DNA of 64,000 nt from positions 62,001 to 126,000 of IMG/VR virus record IMGVR_UViG_3300035698_007246, one strand, 5' to 3'. The position numbers and the translations under genes are program-made. The notes under the pieces were generated by a model, which did no database searches, was not told the DNA's origin, and was given only the letters and a program-made list of their open reading frames with translations. Of this stretch, positions 41,893 through 63,942 are shown piece after piece (position 1 is the stretch's first letter; the number at the start of each line of letters is the position of its first letter).

Positions 41893-42825
41893 TTACTCCT
41901 GGAAGTGTTTATTAAGAAGTTCGGTGACGAGTTCACCAAATTCATTTTGGAATGCTTCTCCATTTTCGTGGTATTGGAACATCCCCCAGCCTCTGACATC
42001 CAGTAGAAGGTTCTCATCACCATCGAATATCATTTGACCGTTAGGGTCGTAGTTGAAGGGTGATTTAATAAGTTTGTTAAGACCTGAGTCTTTAGAGTCA
42101 AAGTCATTTTCTTCATGACATCCCCCAGCTTCTATAATTTCGCCTTTTTTATTTTCATATTTGTTATGTGTAATTCGTTTACAGATGGAAGTTTCTGGAG
42201 CTGGTTCTCTATTATAAAGAGTTCTAAACGCTTTAATATGAGCCATTAGTCCGGCAGCAACGTAGACATAGACATATTCGCCATAGTCTTTGAAATTTCG
42301 AATATATTTAATTGGGACTAAATCAGTGAGCCAGACATCATTTTCAGATTTAAAGAATGGGAATTTATCTTTAGCCATTTCTTTGGCATTGATTTCGAGG
42401 ACAACGGGTTCACCGTGTCTGCTACCGACATCAATGGCAGTTTGGAAGTCATGGCTGAGGTGGACATGATTTCGTTGTTGTTTAGAGATTCCATCTTTTT
42501 TGATAGAGTCTATAAATTTTATGGCAGTTCCGTGGTATAGAGTGTCAGGTGGTTTAATGGGTTTGAGACCTAAGTTGACATTAATGGAATGACCTTGATT
42601 TGCACGAATACGTTTTTTATCTGTACTGAATATAAATCGTTTTTTATTGTTGTCTTTAACGATGTGTTTTAGTGTAGAAATGCCAATGACTATATTATGG
42701 TCATTCATTTTTTTAATTAGTTCTTGAGTATTAGCCCATCCACCATCATCAAGTTTGAGTCCAATGGTATCTGGTTTATGTCTGAGGACAAGGCTCAGGA
42801 ACATGCTTAGTTTTTTATCTTTCAT
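41893..42825 (-). CDS. kptA: RNA 2'-phosphotransferase (Tpt1/KptA) with C-terminal extra domain
   Basis: LSLVLRHKP, RIRANQGHS, LYHGT, RNHVHLS, SENDVWL. Confidence 0.9.
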   Translation of the reverse strand: MKDKKLSMFLSLVLRHKPDTIGLKLDDGGWANTQELIKKMNDHNIVIGISTLKHIVKDNNKKRFIFSTDKKRIRANQGHSINVNLGLKPIKPPDTLYHGTAIKFIDSIKKDGISKQQRNHVHLSHDFQTAIDVGSRHGEPVVLEINAKEMAKDKFPFFKSENDVWLTDLVPIKYIRNFKDYGEYVYVYVAAGLMAHIKAFRTLYNREPAPETSICKRITHNKYENKKGEIIEAGGCHEENDFDSKDSGLNKLIKSPFNYDPNGQMIFDGDENLLLDVRGWGMFQYHENGEAFQNEFGELVTELLNKHFQE

Positions 42826-42882
42826 CGTCACCACCTTTGATTTTTTTAATCATATTATTTATTAAACCAAATATTACAAACA

Positions 42883-52400: not shown

Positions 52401-53612
52401 CTATCCCTTTATCACACCAATTTGTGAAACAATTTCAACAACTTCAACTAAATCCTTTTCATTTTCAATCACCTGAGCGATGTCCTTATAAGCAGGACCG
52501 GATTCATCAAGTATTTTTGAAATATCTGGAGTTGAAACTTCAATTCCCTTTTTCTTAAATCGAGCAACCATATCATCAATGTTAAAAGTTTTACGAGCGT
52601 TAGTTCTTGACATCACTCGACCAGCACCATGACTTGCAGAATCAAAACTATCTTTATTACCAAGACCTTTGACAATATAAGATTGTGTTTCCATTGACCC
52701 CGGAATAATTCCCATATCACCTTCACGTGCTCGAATAGCACCTTTACGATGTATCATCACATTTTCACCAAAATGGTTTTCCGTTGCGGCGTAATTGTGA
52801 TGGGCATTTACTTCCATAGACACAGTTTTTGATATATGGCCATAATGTTTTTCAATTAGATTGAAAACAAGGCTTTTAAATCTTTCCATCATCACATATC
52901 TATTTTGTTTTGCAAAATCAAGTGCAAAATTCATAGCGGTGACATAATCTTGACCTTCTTGAGTATCCATTGGTAGAAATGCTAATTCCCATGACAGTGG
53001 AACCTTAGACCAATATTTTGCATTCAAGTCTTCAGCAAGTTTATTAAAATGTCCACAGACTTTGTATCCAAGATTACGACTACCAGAGTGCAACATAATA
53101 CATAAATTCCCTTTAGAATTTTTCTGCAATTCGATAAAATGGTTTCCTCCACCGAGGGTTCCAAGACTACACCGAGCAACATCAAGATTTTCTTGAATTA
53201 TATCCAATTCAGGTGCTGAATTAAATCCAACCCATTCTTGTTGAGTTTTATGTCTTCCAAATCCAACTGGAATAACTCTACGAGCACTATCAAGTACACA
53301 TTTTACAATACTTCTATTTTGAGTATCACAATTATATGTTAATATCGAAACTGGGATATTAGTTTCAAGAAAAGCCATCCCACATCCAATGTCAACACCC
53401 ACAGCATTTGGAATAACCACATCTTTTGTAGCAATAACACCACCAATTGGCATTCCATACCCTTGATGACCATCAGGCATTATTGACACATGTTTAAATA
53501 TTGCAGGATGATTAGCTAAATTCATAGCTTGGTCAATCGCACCTTGCTCTAAATCAGTTGCCCAATTTTTAATTGGTAACCGTTGTTTATCGTTATCATA
53601 TATTACATTCAT
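52401..53612 (-). CDS. rtcB: RNA 3'-phosphate/5'-OH ligase RtcB
   Basis: MPDGHQGYGMPIGG, GVDIGCG, GTLGGGNHFIE, HSGSR, HHNY, HRKGA, IPGSM, HGAGR, AYKD. Confidence 0.97.
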   Translation of the reverse strand: MNVIYDNDKQRLPIKNWATDLEQGAIDQAMNLANHPAIFKHVSIMPDGHQGYGMPIGGVIATKDVVIPNAVGVDIGCGMAFLETNIPVSILTYNCDTQNRSIVKCVLDSARRVIPVGFGRHKTQQEWVGFNSAPELDIIQENLDVARCSLGTLGGGNHFIELQKNSKGNLCIMLHSGSRNLGYKVCGHFNKLAEDLNAKYWSKVPLSWELAFLPMDTQEGQDYVTAMNFALDFAKQNRYVMMERFKSLVFNLIEKHYGHISKTVSMEVNAHHNYAATENHFGENVMIHRKGAIRAREGDMGIIPGSMETQSYIVKGLGNKDSFDSASHGAGRVMSRTNARKTFNIDDMVARFKKKGIEVSTPDISKILDESGPAYKDIAQVIENEKDLVEVVEIVSQIGVIKG

Positions 53613-56300: not shown

Positions 56301-56834
56301 TTATATTTTGGCTAAATCAGACTTTCTTTTAAATATCATGAAATATGAATGGTTTATTTTTACTCCATCTTGGGGAGTTTCATCATAAATGATTCGATTT
56401 TTATATGCAATGACATCACTTAACACAAATCCAGACTTCTCAGCACACTCTTTCACGTCATATGAGCCACGTAGCTGCCCCATACACCTAAAATCTGTAA
56501 TTCTGACAACTAAGACACCATATTTAAATAACATGGCGTTAAAACGCCCTATGTGGCTTTTTAAAACATCATCGAAATTTTTATTACGAGGGGTTTCAAA
56601 AAAGATAATGTTGTATTTGAAGTCTTTTGCAAATCCTGTGATGTTGTTTGTCTTTGTCACATCAAACAGTTTACTGTTTTCTTGAGACCAATAGTGTGTG
56701 TTTGTCACATCTAACACTTTAGTCTTTCTATTTCGACCACGGAATGGGTCAAAATAGTTAATAATTTTCCCGAATGTCATTTTTACATTTGTATTTTCAA
56801 CAATAGACGGGAAAGGTATTTGAGCTTGAATCAT
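56301..56834 (-). CDS. degenerate amino-methyltransferase-like protein
   Basis: VLDVT, IIFFETP (cf. DPPF), GVLVVRITD, HSYFMIFKR. Confidence 0.45.
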   Translation of the reverse strand: MIQAQIPFPSIVENTNVKMTFGKIINYFDPFRGRNRKTKVLDVTNTHYWSQENSKLFDVTKTNNITGFAKDFKYNIIFFETPRNKNFDDVLKSHIGRFNAMLFKYGVLVVRITDFRCMGQLRGSYDVKECAEKSGFVLSDVIAYKNRIIYDETPQDGVKINHSYFMIFKRKSDLAKI

Positions 56835-57376
56835 AATTTTATATCTTTTAGTCCTTTTACTTGCACTACACAGGAGTCATTTATAGGGAAAGAATGATTA
56901 TGGGGTGTGTTATGATTGGATATATAGAATGCTTTCTTAACACCAGTGTTTAAAGCGTCAATAATAGTCTCTGGTCTATCATCTATAACAACATCATAGT
57001 CATTTTCTTTAAAATGAGCAGTCTTATCAAAACTACCAAGCAATACAATATTGGTTATTTCGGGAAAGTGGGTCTTTATCATACCAACCGTCCCCCATTT
57101 TATTTTATTATCACGAGCGGTTACACAAGCCATGTAATGACCTGCGGATTTCCACTCTTTAATTTTCTTTTTTGAGCCATATGTTGGTTTGAATTTACAC
57201 ATATACTCTGGCATTTTAAACCTCTTATAGCATTCATCACGACCTACAACACCTAATTCTTTCAAATGGTATGTATATTGGCTTCTTAATAGTGGGTTTA
57301 GCTTTAAATCTCGTATTACATCAAAGGGTATAGTATTATCGAACAGTGTGTCATCCAAATCAATAGCAATTCTCAT
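56831..57376 (-). CDS. HAD 5'(3')-deoxyribonucleotidase-like protein
   Basis: IAIDLDDTL, VTAR, VIDDRP. Confidence 0.85.
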   Translation of the reverse strand: MRIAIDLDDTLFDNTIPFDVIRDLKLNPLLRSQYTYHLKELGVVGRDECYKRFKMPEYMCKFKPTYGSKKKIKEWKSAGHYMACVTARDNKIKWGTVGMIKTHFPEITNIVLLGSFDKTAHFKENDYDVVIDDRPETIIDALNTGVKKAFYISNHNTPHNHSFPINDSCVVQVKGLKDIKL

Positions 57377-58840
57377 TTATAAACATCCTTTTAATATATG
57401 TGCTATAACATCAACAGTCCAACCATTACCTAACATCTTATACCGTTGACTATTACTCACAAATGTAATATTCTCCATTTTTAAACCCGATAATTCCACT
57501 TTCAATAAGTTGTGACGCAATTTGTTCAAGTTGTCTATGGATAATTGAATGTTCACTTTGTCCATTACAAATGAAAAGATTTTCAATTCTATTATCAATT
57601 TTATCAAGATTGATATGATGAACTTTTTCATTACTTGTAAGTTGTCGTCCAATACAATCTTCCATAACTTTCCTGTGAACGTCTTTACCATTAATACGTT
57701 TTCTGTATCCACGACTTCCCAATTTATTTTTTTGATTATCTGAGAATAATGGGTCTCTGTGTCGTCTCCAATTTTGGTAATGTTTATTACACATTCCTCT
57801 TGCACCGCCACCCTTTTCTCCAATTTTTCTATCACAATACTTACATTTTTGTTCTGATTGAAATAGTTTTTTAGGTAATTCAACTGAACCATGTCGTTCA
57901 TATCGTTTATAATGTAAAGAACAGAGTTCTCCATATTTATGTGTTGTTGCTTGTCTATTACATCCGCTAACACTACATTTTTGTTTTTGCATAAAAATAC
58001 TCCATTGTTATTTATTTCCTGTGTAATACACATAAAGTATTTATACAAATTCGAAATTTTAGTATAATCATCTGGTACTGTCTGTAATCTTTCACATTCA
58101 ATTGGTGTTAATTTTCGCCACTCAACACCATCTAATATAGCATAATTATATGGGGTTGTGACACGTAATATATTAAATTTATCTTTAAAATTAAAACCCC
58201 CTTTATTGAAACCATGTGGCGTTTCAAAAACTAACTGCCGTCTACATCTATCAAAATATGATTTTAAATCCCCACCTTTAAAATAATGTGCATCAACACA
58301 ATAACTTTTATCTCTATCAACATATCCATGTTCTATAATATTTGTTAATAATACTCCTTTATCTTCAGGTTGTTTAATGTTAGGAATATTAGTCCAATAA
58401 TATCTAACACGATTTTGTGCTGATACTAATACACTATTAATACAAATTGGTTCAACACCCAGATGTTCTGATATAATATCTAAATATTCTTTCTTCATTC
58501 TTACATTCTCGAATAAAAAATATTTAGGTCTACATTCTTTTAGTAATCGGACAAACTCAAAAAACAATTTTGACCGTGGGTCATCAAATGCTAATTGTTT
58601 GCCAGCAAAACTAAATCCTTGACATGGACTTCCCCCAACAAGTAAATCAATCGGTTCTAAATTTTCAGCTCGTACATTACAAACATCACCAAGTTGTATA
58701 GTATCTGGGTAATTATAATCATTTACTTGGTTGGCATATTTATCAATTTCACTACTATAACGTTTATTAACCTTAATACCTAATCGGTCTAAAACTATCC
58801 AGATACATCCCATACCATTAAAAGTACTCAACACATTCAT
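57377..58840 (-). CDS. C5 cytosine DNA methyltransferase with 200-codon in-frame insert between motifs IX and X
   Basis: STFNGMG, GGSPCQGFS, FENV, QNRVRYYW, RKLTPIECERLQTVPDDYT [insert] VSNSQRYKMLGNGW. Confidence 0.9.
   Translation of the reverse strand: MNVLSTFNGMGCIWIVLDRLGIKVNKRYSSEIDKYANQVNDYNYPDTIQLGDVCNVRAENLEPIDLLVGGSPCQGFSFAGKQLAFDDPRSKLFFEFVRLLKECRPKYFLFENVRMKKEYLDIISEHLGVEPICINSVLVSAQNRVRYYWTNIPNIKQPEDKGVLLTNIIEHGYVDRDKSYCVDAHYFKGGDLKSYFDRCRRQLVFETPHGFNKGGFNFKDKFNILRVTTPYNYAILDGVEWRKLTPIECERLQTVPDDYTKISNLYKYFMCITQEINNNGVFLCKNKNVVLADVIDKQQHINMENSVLYIINDMNDMVQLNYLKNYFNQNKNVSIVIEKLEKRVAVQEECVINITKIGDDTETHYSQIIKKINWEVVDTENVLMVKTFTGKLWKIVLDDNLQVMKKFIISILIKLIIELKIFSFVMDKVNIQLSIDNLNKLRHNLLKVELSGLKMENITFVSNSQRYKMLGNGWTVDVIAHILKGCL
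57453..57992 (-). CDS. HNH homing endonuclease nested in the alternative frame of the methyltransferase
   Basis: two CxxxxC/CxxC...CxxHY Zn repeats; VHRKVME...VHHINLDKIDNRIENL...H; GGAG RBS 7 nt upstream. Confidence 0.9.
   Translation of the reverse strand: MQKQKCSVSGCNRQATTHKYGELCSLHYKRYERHGSVELPKKLFQSEQKCKYCDRKIGEKGGGARGMCNKHYQNWRRHRDPLFSDNQKNKLGSRGYRKRINGKDVHRKVMEDCIGRQLTSNEKVHHINLDKIDNRIENLFICNGQSEHSIIHRQLEQIASQLIESGIIGFKNGEYYICE
57461..58060 (-). mobile_element. homing-endonuclease insertion (promoter + RBS + HNH), neither intron nor intein
   Basis: 600 nt separating normally adjacent MTase motifs. Confidence 0.75.
58038..58052 (-). promoter_or_regulatory. late promoter for the nested HNH (GAATTTGTATAAATA)
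   Basis: identical to 26551-26565. Confidence 0.65.
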
Positions 58841-58950
58841 TATATTTTATCCTACACATTTAAATTCTGCTTCTTAGCAATATAATATTTAATTACTTTT
58901 TAGGTGGAGCGGTATCTCCCATTTTTGAACAGAATTAAAAATATTTTAAA

Positions 58951-59262
58951 TTAATATGGATTTTTATTACCAGTTAAAACTTCAGCTTGTTCTGACTGTG
59001 ACATATTTTTTTTCCATGCTTTCTTACCATATTCATTTTCATAACAATACCCTACAATATCAAATGCCGTAGAACCACCAAACATCTTTTCCAAGTCGCC
59101 TTTACATTGATAATTTCGAGTTTTACCATCTTTGCACTCTTTAGGGATACGTTCTATACACAACATATCATCCGGTGGTTGCATACCCTTTGGCATGTGT
59201 GAACTTGTGTTAAATTCTTTTACTTTTCCGCATTTTTTACAGAGGTAATCAAACGTAGGCAT
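58951..59262 (-). CDS. FmdB-family zinc-ribbon protein
   Basis: MPTFDYLCKKCG. Confidence 0.7.
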   Translation of the reverse strand: MPTFDYLCKKCGKVKEFNTSSHMPKGMQPPDDMLCIERIPKECKDGKTRNYQCKGDLEKMFGGSTAFDIVGYCYENEYGKKAWKKNMSQSEQAEVLTGNKNPY

Positions 59263-59272
59263 TCATTTCTCC

Positions 59273-59743
59273 TTATTTCAATTTGTCAATTTTATTTTTT
59301 AAGTTATCTGTATTAGTTTTTAATGTTTTTATAATAGTAACCAATTCTAAAGACCTGGATTTTATTAATCTTGCAGTTTCTTTGTTTGTAGTAATGGGTA
59401 TGTGTAGGTTTTTCATTTCCCGATTAATGGAATTCACTAATTCGGTAACGGTATTGTCTAAATTTTCATGCGTCCGCTGTACACTCATCAACTTTATCTT
59501 GGATTTGTCTAATTTATCAACGATTTTGGAAATCAAATCAAGTGATTTTTGTCTATCATCATCAACTTTAGACATTATTCCAATTAATTTTAATATTACC
59601 TCATCAAATACATCATGTAATTGTTCTTTAAATGCAATATTTGATTTGGTATTGTTTTTATATTGTCTTGTTATCCTATACAACGCATACAATATACATA
59701 CCATTAATATGAAATTAACTATTACTGTTATCATTAGTATCAT
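59273..59743 (-). CDS. TM + coiled-coil protein
   Basis: N-terminal TM. Confidence 0.6.
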   Translation of the reverse strand: MILMITVIVNFILMVCILYALYRITRQYKNNTKSNIAFKEQLHDVFDEVILKLIGIMSKVDDDRQKSLDLISKIVDKLDKSKIKLMSVQRTHENLDNTVTELVNSINREMKNLHIPITTNKETARLIKSRSLELVTIIKTLKTNTDNLKNKIDKLK

Positions 59744-60158: not shown

Positions 60159-61616
60159 TTATTCAGGTACATTCACTTGGTATTTTTCCAAAGCCTTTTC
60201 CATGATAGCAAAAGGTGTGAAATCTTTTCCACCAAGTACAGAAGTAAGAACAGCAGGTGAAAATCCAGAGACAAGTCCAACATCTTTTGAGTTAGCTTTT
60301 TCTGGCGAGCCTCCCATACCACAAGTATTCCAATATACAATCTTAGGACGACTGAAACCAGCCTTTTCCCATCTGTCGATTGCAACTGATACTTCAGCTC
60401 CAGAATTTTTACATCCAGTATTCCATCCATATCCACCGTTACCATTAAATTGCATATCCGAAATAATCAATAGACAATTCGGAATTTGTTCATCAGTAGC
60501 ATTAAATAATTCAGCATATTCTAAAATAGTATCAAGAGCCTTTACAATATCAGTACTTGCAATACTTCTATCGAAAAGATGAGTTTGTTTTAGAGCTTCT
60601 GAAAATGTGTATGGAGTGTTATCAGGTTTCTTACTCCAATCTGTTAATTGAGATTCACTTGAAAACTGTACATACTTTCTATAGAAAGGATTTCCCTTTC
60701 CGATTCTGTCAGAACAATACAATCCAAGAGAACGACTCACATCAATAGCTCTTATAGAACCACCAACGATATTTCTCATTGAAGAAGATGAATCAACGAT
60801 TGGAAGAATTCTCAAATCATTATTTTCCATATAATTAGGCAATGCGTCAAATTGTGCGTCCGCAATTCTTGAGTCGCCATTTTCAGCAGTTCTCAAACAA
60901 TCATGTGGAAACAACACAGAAGCATTGATTTTTGCTTTCTTTTTCGGGTCTTTACTTACAAGAGCGTCTTTATAAGATGAGAAACGGTCTTCATCATGCT
61001 TATTAAACACGTTTGTGTAAAGAGACATTGCCTTTGATGGTAATTTTTCGTAGTCCACTTTATTCCATTGCTTTTTACAAAGGAGAGTTTCTACAATATT
61101 CTTACGACCAGCAGAAAGTAATCTACGGAATTCACCAATTTCACGAACAACCTTCATTTGTCTCAAAGCTCTTAAGATTTGTTTGTCCTTTTTCTTTGCC
61201 CATTTCGAAGCTAAGAAATCTTTAACAGCAATCTTTTCAGCCCATGCAGACGCAGCAGTTTCTTCGACGTCACTATTAAACGTTGAACGCAAATCATCCC
61301 ATCTACCATGTTCGGGTATATACATTATATTTGCAGCAACCCATTCAGGTGACTCATTCGACAACCATTTTAAACAATTTCTAAATCCTTGTCTATTTCC
61401 AGCACCACCCCTTGCATCTCTAACCCAAAATAATAATTTCATTGCAAGTTCATAATTACCAGAATACCAAATTGGTTGGAATAAATCTAAAGCATTAGCA
61501 CCATCTCTTGATGTTCCACGTAACGACCCGGCTTTACTAAAAAATTCAATTGCGTGGTTTCCACAATGTTCATATTGTATTGCACCATTTTCTGTTTTTA
61601 TAAAATTTTTAGACAT
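60159..61616 (-). CDS. DUF2828-type TROVE/Ro60-like helical domain + vWA protein
   Basis: TENGA, FWVRDARGGAGNR, GRWDDL, KW, IVDSSSSM (MIDAS), ISDMQF, IVYWN, VSGFSP. Confidence 0.85.
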   Translation of the reverse strand: MSKNFIKTENGAIQYEHCGNHAIEFFSKAGSLRGTSRDGANALDLFQPIWYSGNYELAMKLLFWVRDARGGAGNRQGFRNCLKWLSNESPEWVAANIMYIPEHGRWDDLRSTFNSDVEETAASAWAEKIAVKDFLASKWAKKKDKQILRALRQMKVVREIGEFRRLLSAGRKNIVETLLCKKQWNKVDYEKLPSKAMSLYTNVFNKHDEDRFSSYKDALVSKDPKKKAKINASVLFPHDCLRTAENGDSRIADAQFDALPNYMENNDLRILPIVDSSSSMRNIVGGSIRAIDVSRSLGLYCSDRIGKGNPFYRKYVQFSSESQLTDWSKKPDNTPYTFSEALKQTHLFDRSIASTDIVKALDTILEYAELFNATDEQIPNCLLIISDMQFNGNGGYGWNTGCKNSGAEVSVAIDRWEKAGFSRPKIVYWNTCGMGGSPEKANSKDVGLVSGFSPAVLTSVLGGKDFTPFAIMEKALEKYQVNVPE

Positions 61617-61676: not shown

Positions 61677-62092
61677 CTAAATATTATTTTTATGTTTTTT
61701 AATACTATTATTTCTTTTACTTGTTATACACAAATTATTTAAATGACCAATTTCACATGGGTTCATATTATTCATGAATCCATGATATATATATATATAT
61801 ATATTAATCTTGTGATCAATGGTTCTATACATAGGGTTATTATATTCTTTTGAATTAGTTAATAATTTTTCACCAGTATAATAATCAAAACCATTCCAAT
61901 TTTTAGTTTCTTTACTTATACAACTTTGAAATTACCATCATCATTGATAAATTTTATTACTTCTAATAACATATCTATAATTTGAAACTTATCATTACAG
62001 TTATTTAATTCAGCAATATCAGTTTCATTATCAAGTCCTAAAGTTTCAAATTTATATATTAAATTTTTCTTTGTGATAATTTTATCTTTCAT
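61677..62092 (-). pseudogene. frameshifted HNH-like gene with (AT)10 tract
   Basis: 58-aa N-terminal part stops near 61916; another frame gives WNGFDYYTGE...IDHKINIYIYIYHGF...NLCITSKRNNSIK. Confidence 0.6.
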
Positions 62093-63847: not shown

Positions 63848-63942
63848 TGGCAGAGGGGAAGGGACTTGAACCCTCATCGGTATAGTTCATACACCTACAC
63901 ACGATTAGCAATCGTGTCTCTTACCAATTAGAGTACCCCTCT
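63848..63942 (-). tRNA. tRNA-Ser (GCT), CCA encoded
   Basis: AGAGGGG/CCCCTCT acceptor stem, ACACGA-TTGCTAA-TCGTGT anticodon arm, long variable arm, GGTTCAAGTCC T-arm, G-CCA end. Confidence 0.92.

Follow-up and report, generated by a model that had tools for sequence, protein, structure and literature searches.

An HNH endonuclease gene hidden out of frame inside a phage DNA methylase gene was first described in 2023-2025 for mycobacteriophages, where it is known as the ShiLan domain (ShiLan gp65, Starcevich gp66; PMC9957025, PMC11855218). In these phages, an insertion of about 200 aa in an N6/N4 methylase has no stop in the host frame, and a complete HNH ORF occupies the third frame (offset 2), with its stop at the 3' junction. 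No intron or intein signature is present, the distribution is patchy, the element is less diverged than its host, and the predicted structure of the host-frame peptide is of low confidence. A second published case, Pacc40 gp60 (PMC11855218, section 3.6), again has an out-of-frame nuclease-like ORF inside a methylase ORF that stays open, but in a host protein family and at a site different from those analyzed here, and with a less certain HNH assignment. Other mobile nucleases deal with their insertion in different ways. Group I intron-borne HNH enzymes, such as I-HmuI of Bacillus phage SPO1 and I-PfoP3I, interrupt conserved phage genes at conserved sites, are inferred to live by homing, and rely on a ribozyme that removes the insert from the mRNA, with the host frame normally closed by stops. 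Inteins with homing endonuclease domains are in-frame insertions at conserved sites that are translated with the host protein, and some actinophage inteins carry out-of-frame or antisense endonuclease genes (bioRxiv 10.1101/2025.01.02.630785); they have a Hint splicing fold and conserved junction residues. Free-standing HNH cassettes without intron or intein that split or neighbor their target, such as mobE with the split nrdA of phage Aeh1 and the T4 mobA / gene 60 bypass cassette, neutralize the damage by gene splitting or by ribosomal bypassing of 50 nt (see also PMC2790892, PMC2988022), whereas the element analyzed here would do so by full read-through of 594 nt. Rickettsia palindromic elements are selfish DNA tolerated inside ORFs because they stay in frame and are translated as an extra peptide, but they are short and non-coding and carry no nuclease gene, so that there is no dual coding.

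We analyzed a window of 64,000 nucleotides (positions 62,001 to 126,000 of IMG/VR record IMGVR_UViG_3300035698_007246), in which a C5-methyltransferase gene carries an insertion of this type. All features are located on the minus strand:

57377..58840 (-), complete 487-aa ORF, a C5-cytosine DNA methyltransferase read through the insertion
58059..58840 (-), methyltransferase part upstream of the insert (motifs I-IX, ending ..ERLQTVPDDYT)
57465..58058 (-), 594-nt insertion, 198 host-frame codons without a stop
57993..58058 (-), leader of the insertion before the HNH start, coding only in the host frame
58000..58003 (-), Shine-Dalgarno-like GGAG, 7 nt upstream of the HNH ATG
57453..57992 (-), HNH endonuclease ORF, 179 aa, at frame offset 2 relative to the methyltransferase
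57453..57464 (-), last four HNH codons (I-C-E-stop), overlapping host codons that align with the insert-free allele (..F-V-S-N)
57377..57464 (-), resumed methyltransferase with motif X (SNSQRYKMLGNGWTVDV..) and the C-terminus

The host ORF matches PF00145 (E 3e-38) and TIGR00675 dcm (E 2e-39) and contains motifs I, IV (PCQ), VI (ENV), VIII (QxRxR), IX and X in order, with the PCQ, ENV and QNR motifs invariant in our alignments (a row from a GenBank phage record was left out of one alignment). Its closest solved relatives are the DNMT3A, HhaI and HaeIII catalytic domains, and it is 76% identical to an insert-free homolog (P0008) outside the insert. A syntenic allele (L133), which has the same gene order (methyltransferase, NT5C-like gene, 177-aa ORF) and 78% nucleotide identity in the flanks, lacks exactly 594 nt at 58058..57465 in a global DNA alignment with L133:410-1294. 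The original prediction had placed motifs IX and X 600 nt or 200 codons apart, which is essentially right. In insert-free alleles, three residues separate ..PDNYT from SN.QRYKMLGNGW. The HNH ORF starts 848 nt into the methyltransferase ORF, and the host frame thus corresponds to the HNH +1 frame. Counted from the codon after ..YT, 68 nt precede the HNH ATG, an in-frame stop in the HNH frame lies 6 codons before this ATG, and the HNH TAA is formed by the host Ser-Asn codons (AGT AAT). The observation of an intact HNH ORF nested in a methyltransferase whose frame stays open is therefore confirmed. A megablast search of the region against 50,697 phage records gave no match.

The nested ORF matches PF13392 HNH_3 at 30.8 bits (cut-off 24.8) and several HNH PHROGs, down to E 2e-18 for phrog_19902. 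Among 31 related alleles, His-125, His-126, Asn-138, His-148 and His-152 of the HH..N..N..H..H core are invariant, Asn-134 is kept in 30 of 31, and two CCCH zinc knuckles are conserved, with one ligand, Cys-50, present in 28 of 31. AlphaFold predicts the HNH protein with a mean pLDDT of 91.4. The best Foldseek matches of this model in the PDB, among them HNH Cascade and I-HmuI, had E >= 1.3 and were not significant, and PDB sequence searches with the HNH protein and with its profile returned nothing meaningful. The insert read in the host frame matches no Pfam, PHROG or NCBIfam family, and its ESM Atlas recognition score (2086) is in the range of shuffled sequences. In the predicted structure of the 487-aa protein, pLDDT is 85-97 for residues 1-177 and 240-262 and 87-93 for the resumed C-terminal part, but ranges from below 50 to 65 in the insert. 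The overall confidence of this model is low (mean pLDDT 64, pTM 0.57), and it cannot show that the insert is harmless.

We next asked whether the open host frame could have arisen by chance. The host frame has no stop in the insert, whereas the third frame has 33 within the HNH ORF. In the other ORFs of the window, the +1 stop density is 0.072 per codon and the longest +1 open run is 107 codons. Recoding the HNH gene synonymously with the codon usage of the window gave 7.6 stops on average, and none of 20,000 recodings was stop-free. The open frame is thus more than chance. Permutation of codons within the gene is only marginal for the window allele alone (1.96 stops expected, P(0) = 0.04). 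We searched for relatives through the HNH protein, which does not depend on the host frame, and found 31 non-identical nested alleles with 29-47% GC, all at the same IX/X site. Together they have 0 host-frame stops in 5871 codons against 101.8 expected from within-gene synonymous-codon permutation, whereas six free-standing relatives have 39 observed against 38.0 expected. Two more alleles found through the methyltransferase protein are also open. The 31 alleles share ancestry and are not independent trials, so that the argument rests on the many substitutions between them (36-69% HNH identity). In addition, alleles whose host frame broke could be lost quickly or be classed as free-standing, which would inflate the 31 of 31.

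The way in which stops are avoided can be seen in the codon usage. NTA codons are depleted in the dual-coded part compared with the methyltransferase-only part: ATA represents 5% versus 32% of Ile codons, GTA 3% versus 30% of Val codons, and TTA 22% versus 41% of Leu codons. Only 19 of 178 residue pairs can make a stop in the +1 frame, against 57 for the +2 frame, and none is unavoidable. Ten distinct leader lengths between 29 and 71 nt all equal 2 mod 3. Across 29 insert-bearing alleles, motif X downstream of the insert differs at codon positions 1/2/3 by 0.30/0.24/0.63, indicating purifying selection on the protein. The NTA depletion, the leader lengths and the selection on motif X are further evidence that the host frame is translated through the insert. 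Over the same columns, the HNH frame is better conserved than the host frame (0.44 versus 0.31 amino acid identity). Codon identity at conserved residues is close to the usage expectation (0.578 versus 0.543), and given this marginal difference we rejected the idea that the host-frame peptide has a selected sequence. The HNH frame is thus the primary frame, and it is the host-frame reading that is the overprint, although the original prediction described the HNH gene as the overprinted one. A motif resembling the GGAG upstream of the HNH ATG was seen in only 8 of the 31 alleles, and sigma-70-like hexamers at the 5' junction are no more frequent than in shuffled sequences (23 versus 19.5).

The insert is scattered on the methyltransferase tree. 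Of the 120 best methyltransferase hits, 13 carry the insert, requiring 9 changes on the tree, and holding them as one clade costs 153 lnL units (p-AU 0.0046). Three insert-bearing loci (L002, L010 and L011) share 88-90% nucleotide identity in the element but only 58-63% in the host gene. The element is thus less diverged than its hosts, which together with its scattered distribution indicates that it is mobile and gives indirect support for homing. An Rfam search with a permissive threshold found no intron family at E <= 10 in 57000-59300 and only sub-threshold chance hits, the best of which was a miRNA model over the leader (24.9 bits, gathering score 62.6); there was no hit at E <= 1 in 14 related loci. 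Neither the leader (fold z = -1.0) nor the whole insert (z = -1.1) is significantly folded, and we rejected a conserved RNA structure. No Hint or intein family was found in Pfam or NCBIfam searches of the host-frame peptide, the first and last insert residues vary among alleles (K/E/Q/A ... V/N/I/M), and there is no conserved His-Asn. The existence of alleles with and without the insert, the consistently open frame, the lack of homology of the insert-frame peptide to a real domain and the intact HNH frame had been proposed beforehand as sequence-level tests, and each came out in favor. The interpretation of the original prediction, that the element survives by dual coding without splicing, is thus supported at the level of sequence, although the idea is not new, since the same architecture was already published.

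Our element and the ShiLan element share a homologous HNH core (37% over 105 aa, pairwise BLASTP E 8e-14), and tblastn located HNH matches inside the Starcevich, Filuzino, Pollywog, MISSy and Murica methylases. Starcevich shows the same frame relation. However, the host there is an N6/N4 methylase (PF01555 in Starcevich gp66), whereas here it is a C5 enzyme with the insert at a different site, the motif IX/X linker. ShiLan has a GTG start 18 nt into the insert and no RBS, compared with an ATG 68 nt in and an upstream GGAG in our element. The ShiLan genomes have about 64% GC, where an open off-frame is weak evidence (2.0 stops expected, P(0) = 0.03), compared with 30% GC here. The published work reports no test of stop avoidance, and a text search of PMC11855218 found no mention of GC content.

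It is likely (with a probability of roughly 0.75) that a mobile HNH homing endonuclease cassette has invaded the short linker between motifs IX and X of the methyltransferase gene and persists there without RNA or protein splicing. In this view, the HNH is translated on its own from the internal GGAG and ATG, and its synonymous sites and 5' leader have been shaped so that the host frame has no stop and stays in register. Ribosomes starting at the methyltransferase ATG would read 198 extra codons of essentially meaningless peptide and then resume motif X. The extra peptide would sit in the IX/X linker, before the C-terminal helix that returns to the catalytic domain, so that the enzyme would probably still work. 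Spread would occur by cleavage or nicking of insert-free alleles at the conserved IX/X junction during co-infection, followed by recombinational repair from the occupied allele. Our analysis establishes the insertion relative to a syntenic empty allele, the intact and conserved HNH, the selection against host-frame stops, the purifying selection on motif X, the patchy distribution of an element less diverged than its hosts, and the lack of a detectable intron or intein. In contrast, the absence of splicing, read-through translation into an active 487-aa methyltransferase that tolerates the insert, independent initiation of the HNH and its cleavage of empty sites are inferred from sequence alone.

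We considered whether the insert is instead removed from the mRNA by an unrecognized self-splicing or protein-assisted reaction, with the ribozyme overlapping the HNH ORF and the open host frame being incidental. HNH genes are commonly carried by phage group I introns (PMC3428280), and the window encodes RtcB and Tpt1/KptA RNA-repair enzymes 4-15 kb away. The ShiLan authors noted a weak resemblance between the 5' end of the insert and the downstream exon, and we found a similar one in the window (ISN-LYKY versus VSNSQRYKM, z = 2.2) and in a few alleles (YKYVGNN, LYGNIW). Across 24 alleles, however, the mean score (13.75) is not above that of a mid-insert control (15.25), and we thus do not claim a decayed duplicate of the motif X lead. 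As little as 29 nt lies outside the ORF on the 5' side and none on the 3' side, and a spliced insert would need neither stop avoidance nor NTA depletion nor leader lengths fixed modulo 3, which together with the Rfam and folding results makes this reading very unlikely. Removal of the translated insert from the protein, by non-canonical protein splicing or by proteolysis with the two methyltransferase pieces staying associated, would explain the open frame equally well. The first residue after the insert is Ser in nearly all alleles, as is required for inteins, and the C-terminal piece (28 aa with motif X) needs to be made somehow. Yet this Ser belongs to the host motif and is also present in empty alleles, and the poorly conserved host-frame peptide with its low pLDDT is unlikely to be a catalytic fold, which, with the missing intein features, makes this alternative unlikely.

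It also appears improbable that the methyltransferase is already dead and that the frame is kept open for the benefit of the HNH, for example because continuous translation protects the mRNA or avoids polarity. Phage methyltransferases are often dispensable, and translation through the leader could influence HNH initiation, but the catalytic motifs before the insert and motif X after it are conserved with a protein-like substitution pattern in all insert-bearing alleles, translation of the HNH ORF alone would already cover the mRNA, and free-standing relatives do not keep the +1 frame open. A further possibility, likewise unlikely but not excluded, is that the nested pair is functionally coupled. 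Every nested relative examined is located in a DNA methyltransferase gene, at four distinct sites in two unrelated methyltransferase classes (C5 IX/X, C5 after motif VIII, the ShiLan N6/N4 site, and an N6/N4 site in the related locus L131), and in every nested case the host frame is the stop-free HNH +1 frame. A whole clade of HNH endonucleases is specialized on DNA methyltransferase genes. If this exclusive association is functional, the nuclease would be sensitive to the methylation made by its host enzyme and would cut DNA that lacks it. The pair, whose joint inheritance nesting would guarantee, would act as a single-gene hybrid of a homing element and a restriction-modification or addiction module, rather than as a plain parasite of a conserved, dispensable gene. 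However, insert-free methyltransferases are common and are close relatives, insertion at conserved motifs, a patchy distribution and an element younger than its host are the classic homing pattern, and conservation and dispensability of methyltransferase genes could by themselves explain the bias.

Homing endonuclease genes are thought to need an intron, an intein, an intergenic site or gene splitting to avoid killing their target gene. The element described here would use a fourth route, recoding itself so that the host ribosome reads through it. This route was proposed in 2025 for GC-rich mycobacteriophages, where an open off-frame is expected by chance about 3% of the time per gene. The AT-rich family turns the proposal into a quantitative result, with much stronger evidence that the open frame is selected and with free-standing relatives as a negative control, and shows that the phenomenon is widespread in metagenomic phages and MAGs, in C5 as well as N6/N4 methyltransferases. 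Gene callers report only the long ORF, and the nuclease is therefore invisible in annotations, while the methyltransferase looks like a protein with an unexplained 200-aa domain. The family also offers a clean system for asking how much junk peptide an enzyme tolerates and how overlapping genes evolve.

The following minus-strand features were identified in the window, which has a GC content of 30.4% and comes from a 223,879-bp IMG/VR viral contig.

57377..58840, minus strand: ORF of 487 aa matching the C5-cytosine methyltransferase family (PF00145, E 3e-38; TIGR00675, E 2e-39).
57453..57992, minus strand: ORF of 179 aa nested in the first, 848 nt from its start and therefore at frame offset 2, matching PF13392 HNH_3 at 30.8 bits (cut-off 24.8) and HNH PHROGs down to E 2e-18.
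58058..57465, minus strand: insertion of 594 nt in the methyltransferase gene.
56301-56834, minus strand: ORF of 177 aa, two genes downstream of the methyltransferase, with a weak PHROG match to a DNA methyltransferase family (E 8e-5) and no Pfam hit.
41893-42834, 52401-53612, 60159-61616 and 63848-63942, all minus strand: RNA-repair-type genes near the methyltransferase, namely a Tpt1/KptA RNA 2'-phosphotransferase (E 2e-49), an RtcB ligase (E 1e-108), a Ro/TROVE-like vWA protein (phrog_850, DUF2828) and tRNA-Ser(gct).

The host gene reads ..ERLQTVPDDYT, then about 198 codons, then VSNSQRYKMLGNGWTVDV.., whereas insert-free homologs have only three residues between these blocks. The closest homolog, P0008, is 76% identical outside the insert and lies on two contigs, L132 and L133, with the same downstream gene order as the window (methyltransferase, NT5C-like gene, 177-aa ORF). 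A global DNA alignment gives a single gap of 594 nt, with 78% nucleotide identity in the flanks. The HNH ATG is located 68 nt into the insert and 7 nt after a GGAG, although an SD-like motif precedes only 8 of 31 HNH starts among the related alleles described below. The only in-frame stop upstream is 6 codons away. The last four HNH codons, including the TAA, overlap host codons that align with the empty allele, and the stop is made by the host Ser-Asn codons AGT AAT.

We next asked whether the open host frame could have arisen by chance. Inside the HNH ORF the host frame, which corresponds to HNH +1, has 0 stops, whereas the third frame has 33. In the other window ORFs of 150 aa or more, the +1 frame has 0.072 stops per codon, and the longest open +1 run is 107 codons. 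Recoding the HNH protein with the codon usage of the window gave a mean of 7.6 stops, and none of 20,000 recodings was stop-free. The open host frame is thus not due to chance.

To survey related elements independently of the host frame, we searched viral, metagenome and genome contigs with an HNH protein alignment and determined for every locus which frames are open around the HNH. Thirty-one non-identical, full-length relatives (36-57% identity to the window HNH, GC 29-47%) are nested in a longer ORF in the HNH +1 frame. Wherever the flanks are on the contig, this ORF is a C5-methyltransferase, with the HNH located between ERLQxxPDxYT and S(N/D)xQRYKxLGN, and none has a host-frame stop. Permutation of synonymous codons within each HNH, a conservative test because it keeps the already biased codon set of each gene, predicts 101.8 stops over 5871 codons, whereas 0 are observed. 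The alleles are related, however, so that 31 of 31 does not represent 31 independent trials, broken alleles may be under-sampled, and for the window allele alone the within-gene permutation is marginal (P(0) = 0.04). Six free-standing relatives have 39 stops against 38.0 expected.

Three loci are informative individually. L030 (43% identity) has no methyltransferase around it, and its +1 frame is open for only 34 codons. L037:2869-3513 is also free-standing and lies between unrelated genes; its +1 frame has stops in the 5' half, but the 113 codons at the 3' end are still open and still resemble the methyltransferase-frame insert peptide, suggesting an element that left a methyltransferase and is losing the constraint. 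In L089:1778-3727, the methyltransferase is split into two ORFs upstream of motif IX, and the nested HNH has only a 138-aa ORF with a TTG start, yet the host frame through the insert remains open. Two more alleles, obtained through the methyltransferase protein, also hold intact HNH ORFs at offset 2 (65% and 68% identity). In locus L138, the HNH runs about 10 codons into the functional motif X and stops at the GGT AAT of LGNGW.

Hidden HNH genes were also found at other positions. A second, related family has two helix-turn-helix-like N-terminal repeats plus the same HNH core (45% identity to the window HNH over 108 aa) and is nested in the +1 relation inside C5-methyltransferase ORFs, immediately after motif VIII (..FGVPQRRRRxF..). 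It was seen in L043:2704-3330, L122:2719-3333, L101, L103, L067, L056, L063, L119 and L121, and in phage Bombitas (L006:2156-2773). None has a host-frame stop; L043, for example, at 35% GC, is expected to have 6.4. The 1081-aa methyltransferase ORF of L122 (2186-5428) carries, in addition to the nested out-of-frame HNH, an in-frame HNH_3 domain at residues 896-938 (E 3e-15), which may be a second, in-frame invader or an intein. In L131, a 151-aa HNH relative (1854-2309) is nested out of frame in an N6/N4 methyltransferase (PF01555; open frame 505-2649) at 44% GC, with 0 host-frame stops against 2.65 expected, and represents a further host class outside the actinophages. In L003:4588-7587, the gene directly downstream of an insert-bearing methyltransferase looks like an anaerobic ribonucleotide reductase and is interrupted in frame by an intein-like segment, starting with Cys and ending ..VHN followed by Thr, that contains an HNH-like motif. 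If so, this would be a second mobile element next to the first.

We then analyzed how the frame is kept open and which frame is primary. NTA codons, which create TAA or TAG in the +1 frame, are depleted in the dual-coded part relative to the methyltransferase-only part of the same genes: ATA accounts for 5% versus 32% of Ile codons, GTA for 3% versus 30% of Val codons and TTA for 22% versus 41% of Leu codons. For the window HNH protein, only 19 of 178 residue pairs can yield a +1 stop, against 57 for +2, and none is unavoidable, which explains why every nested case uses the +1 relation. The leader codes only in the host frame and has ten different lengths between 29 and 71 nt, all of which equal 2 mod 3. 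Over the same alignment columns, the HNH frame is better conserved than the host frame (0.44 versus 0.31 and 0.54 versus 0.39 amino acid identity), whereas codon identity at conserved residues is close to what restricted codon usage predicts (0.578 versus 0.543). The host-frame peptide is therefore constrained mainly to lack stops rather than to keep a particular sequence.

The host-frame peptide matches no family in Pfam, PHROG or NCBIfam searches and looks like shuffled sequence to the Atlas model. AlphaFold gives the HNH frame a mean pLDDT of 91.4 from a 31-row alignment, although a Foldseek search did not confirm the predicted HNH fold. In the predicted model of the full 487-aa protein, which is of low overall confidence (pLDDT 64), the methyltransferase core and the C-terminal motif X helix score 85-97, whereas the insert scores below 50 for residues 263-330 and 51-65 for the rest. 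All 31 nested HNHs keep two CCCH zinc sets and the HH..N..N..H..H core nearly without exception.

As judged from its sequence, the host gene still looks functional. The catalytic motifs before the insert are invariant in insert-bearing alleles. The 18 codons around motif X after the insert differ at codon positions 1/2/3 by 0.30/0.24/0.63 across 29 alleles, which is the pattern of a translated, selected protein segment. This segment has no conserved start codon of its own and can be made only by reading through the insert, or from a spliced message.

We found no sign of splicing. Rfam searches returned no intron at E <= 10 in 57000-59300, and nothing at E <= 1 in 14 related loci covering 66.8 kb. 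The leader and the whole insert fold no better than shuffled sequences (z = -1.0 and -1.1, respectively). There is no Hint or intein match, and the junction residues vary among alleles, with the exception of the +1 Ser, which is part of the host motif and is present in empty alleles too. The first host-frame residues of the window insert (58030-58058, minus strand; K-ISN-LYKY) resemble the downstream flank (57420-57460, minus strand; VSNSQRYKM), and the insert uses a TCG Ser codon where the empty allele has TCA. This resemblance, of a kind also reported by the authors of the ShiLan work discussed below, has z = 2.2 in the window but is not significant across 24 alleles. Most important, a spliced insert would not need stop avoidance, NTA depletion or a leader locked modulo 3.

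The distribution of the insert points to mobility. Among the 120 best methyltransferase homologs, 13 carry it, and on a tree built without the insert columns they need 9 changes, at least 4 of them forced by well supported branches. The window gene is found in a 99%-supported group of 10 in which it alone is occupied. Holding the 13 together costs 153 lnL units (p-AU 0.0046). Three insert-bearing loci, L002, L010 and L011, share 88-90% nucleotide identity in the element but only 58-63% in the methyltransferase part. The insertion site lies between two of the most conserved blocks of the gene, as is typical of homing sites.

Our analyses establish an insertion relative to an empty syntenic allele, an intact and conserved HNH, selection against host-frame stops and for frame register, protein-level selection on motif X, a patchy and host-incongruent distribution of the insert and the absence of a detectable ribozyme or intein. 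The mechanism itself is inferred from sequence alone for every member. In this view, ribosomes would translate a 487-aa methyltransferase whose extra 198 residues form a poorly structured excursion in the linker before the C-terminal helix; by alignment with DNMT3A, the site is between ..HYTDV and SNMS..RQRLLGRSW. The HNH would be made separately from the GGAG/ATG and would cut or nick empty IX/X sites, with repair copying the element in. Methylation by the insert-bearing protein is likewise an inference. We assign a probability of roughly 0.75 to this package.

The remaining alternatives appear unlikely. The insert might be removed post-translationally, or nuclease and methylase might be functionally coupled, both of which we regard as improbable, the former being slightly more likely than the latter. 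Cryptic RNA splicing is more doubtful still, and a dead host gene is the least likely of the four.

A full-text literature search showed that the same architecture has already been described. The "ShiLan domain" is a 202-aa stop-free insertion in a mycobacteriophage DNA methylase with a disjunct distribution (PMC9957025, 2023), which was later shown to hide a 195-aa HNH in the third frame, with its stop in the last four nucleotides and no detectable intron or intein (PMC11855218, 2025). Pacc40 gp60 is a second case. Both papers are computational. The window HNH hits these very insertions by tblastn and aligns with the Starcevich copy at 37% over 105 aa (pairwise E 8e-14), and the frame relation is the same. 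However, the ShiLan host is an N6/N4 methylase (PF01555) rather than a C5 enzyme, and the site is different. Those genomes have about 64% GC, where the open frame is weak evidence on its own (expected 2.0 stops, P(0) = 0.034). A text search of the 2025 paper found no mention of cytosine methylases or of GC content, and neither paper reports a test of stop avoidance.

Existing annotations obscure such elements. In L137:1818-3395 and L138:2501-4294, public gene calls list only the long methyltransferase ORF, and the nested HNH ORFs (177 and 187 aa) are not called, so that such nucleases are systematically missing from protein databases. GenBank records for Mycobacterium phage Bombitas (L006, 64423-66306) and related cluster J phages annotate the interrupted C5-methyltransferase inconsistently, as two methyltransferase CDS, as methyltransferase plus HNH or as "coding region not determined", with the HNH hidden in the tail of the first CDS. 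The window element shares its architecture with the published ShiLan insertion, and what it adds is statistical proof of selection and a much wider distribution.
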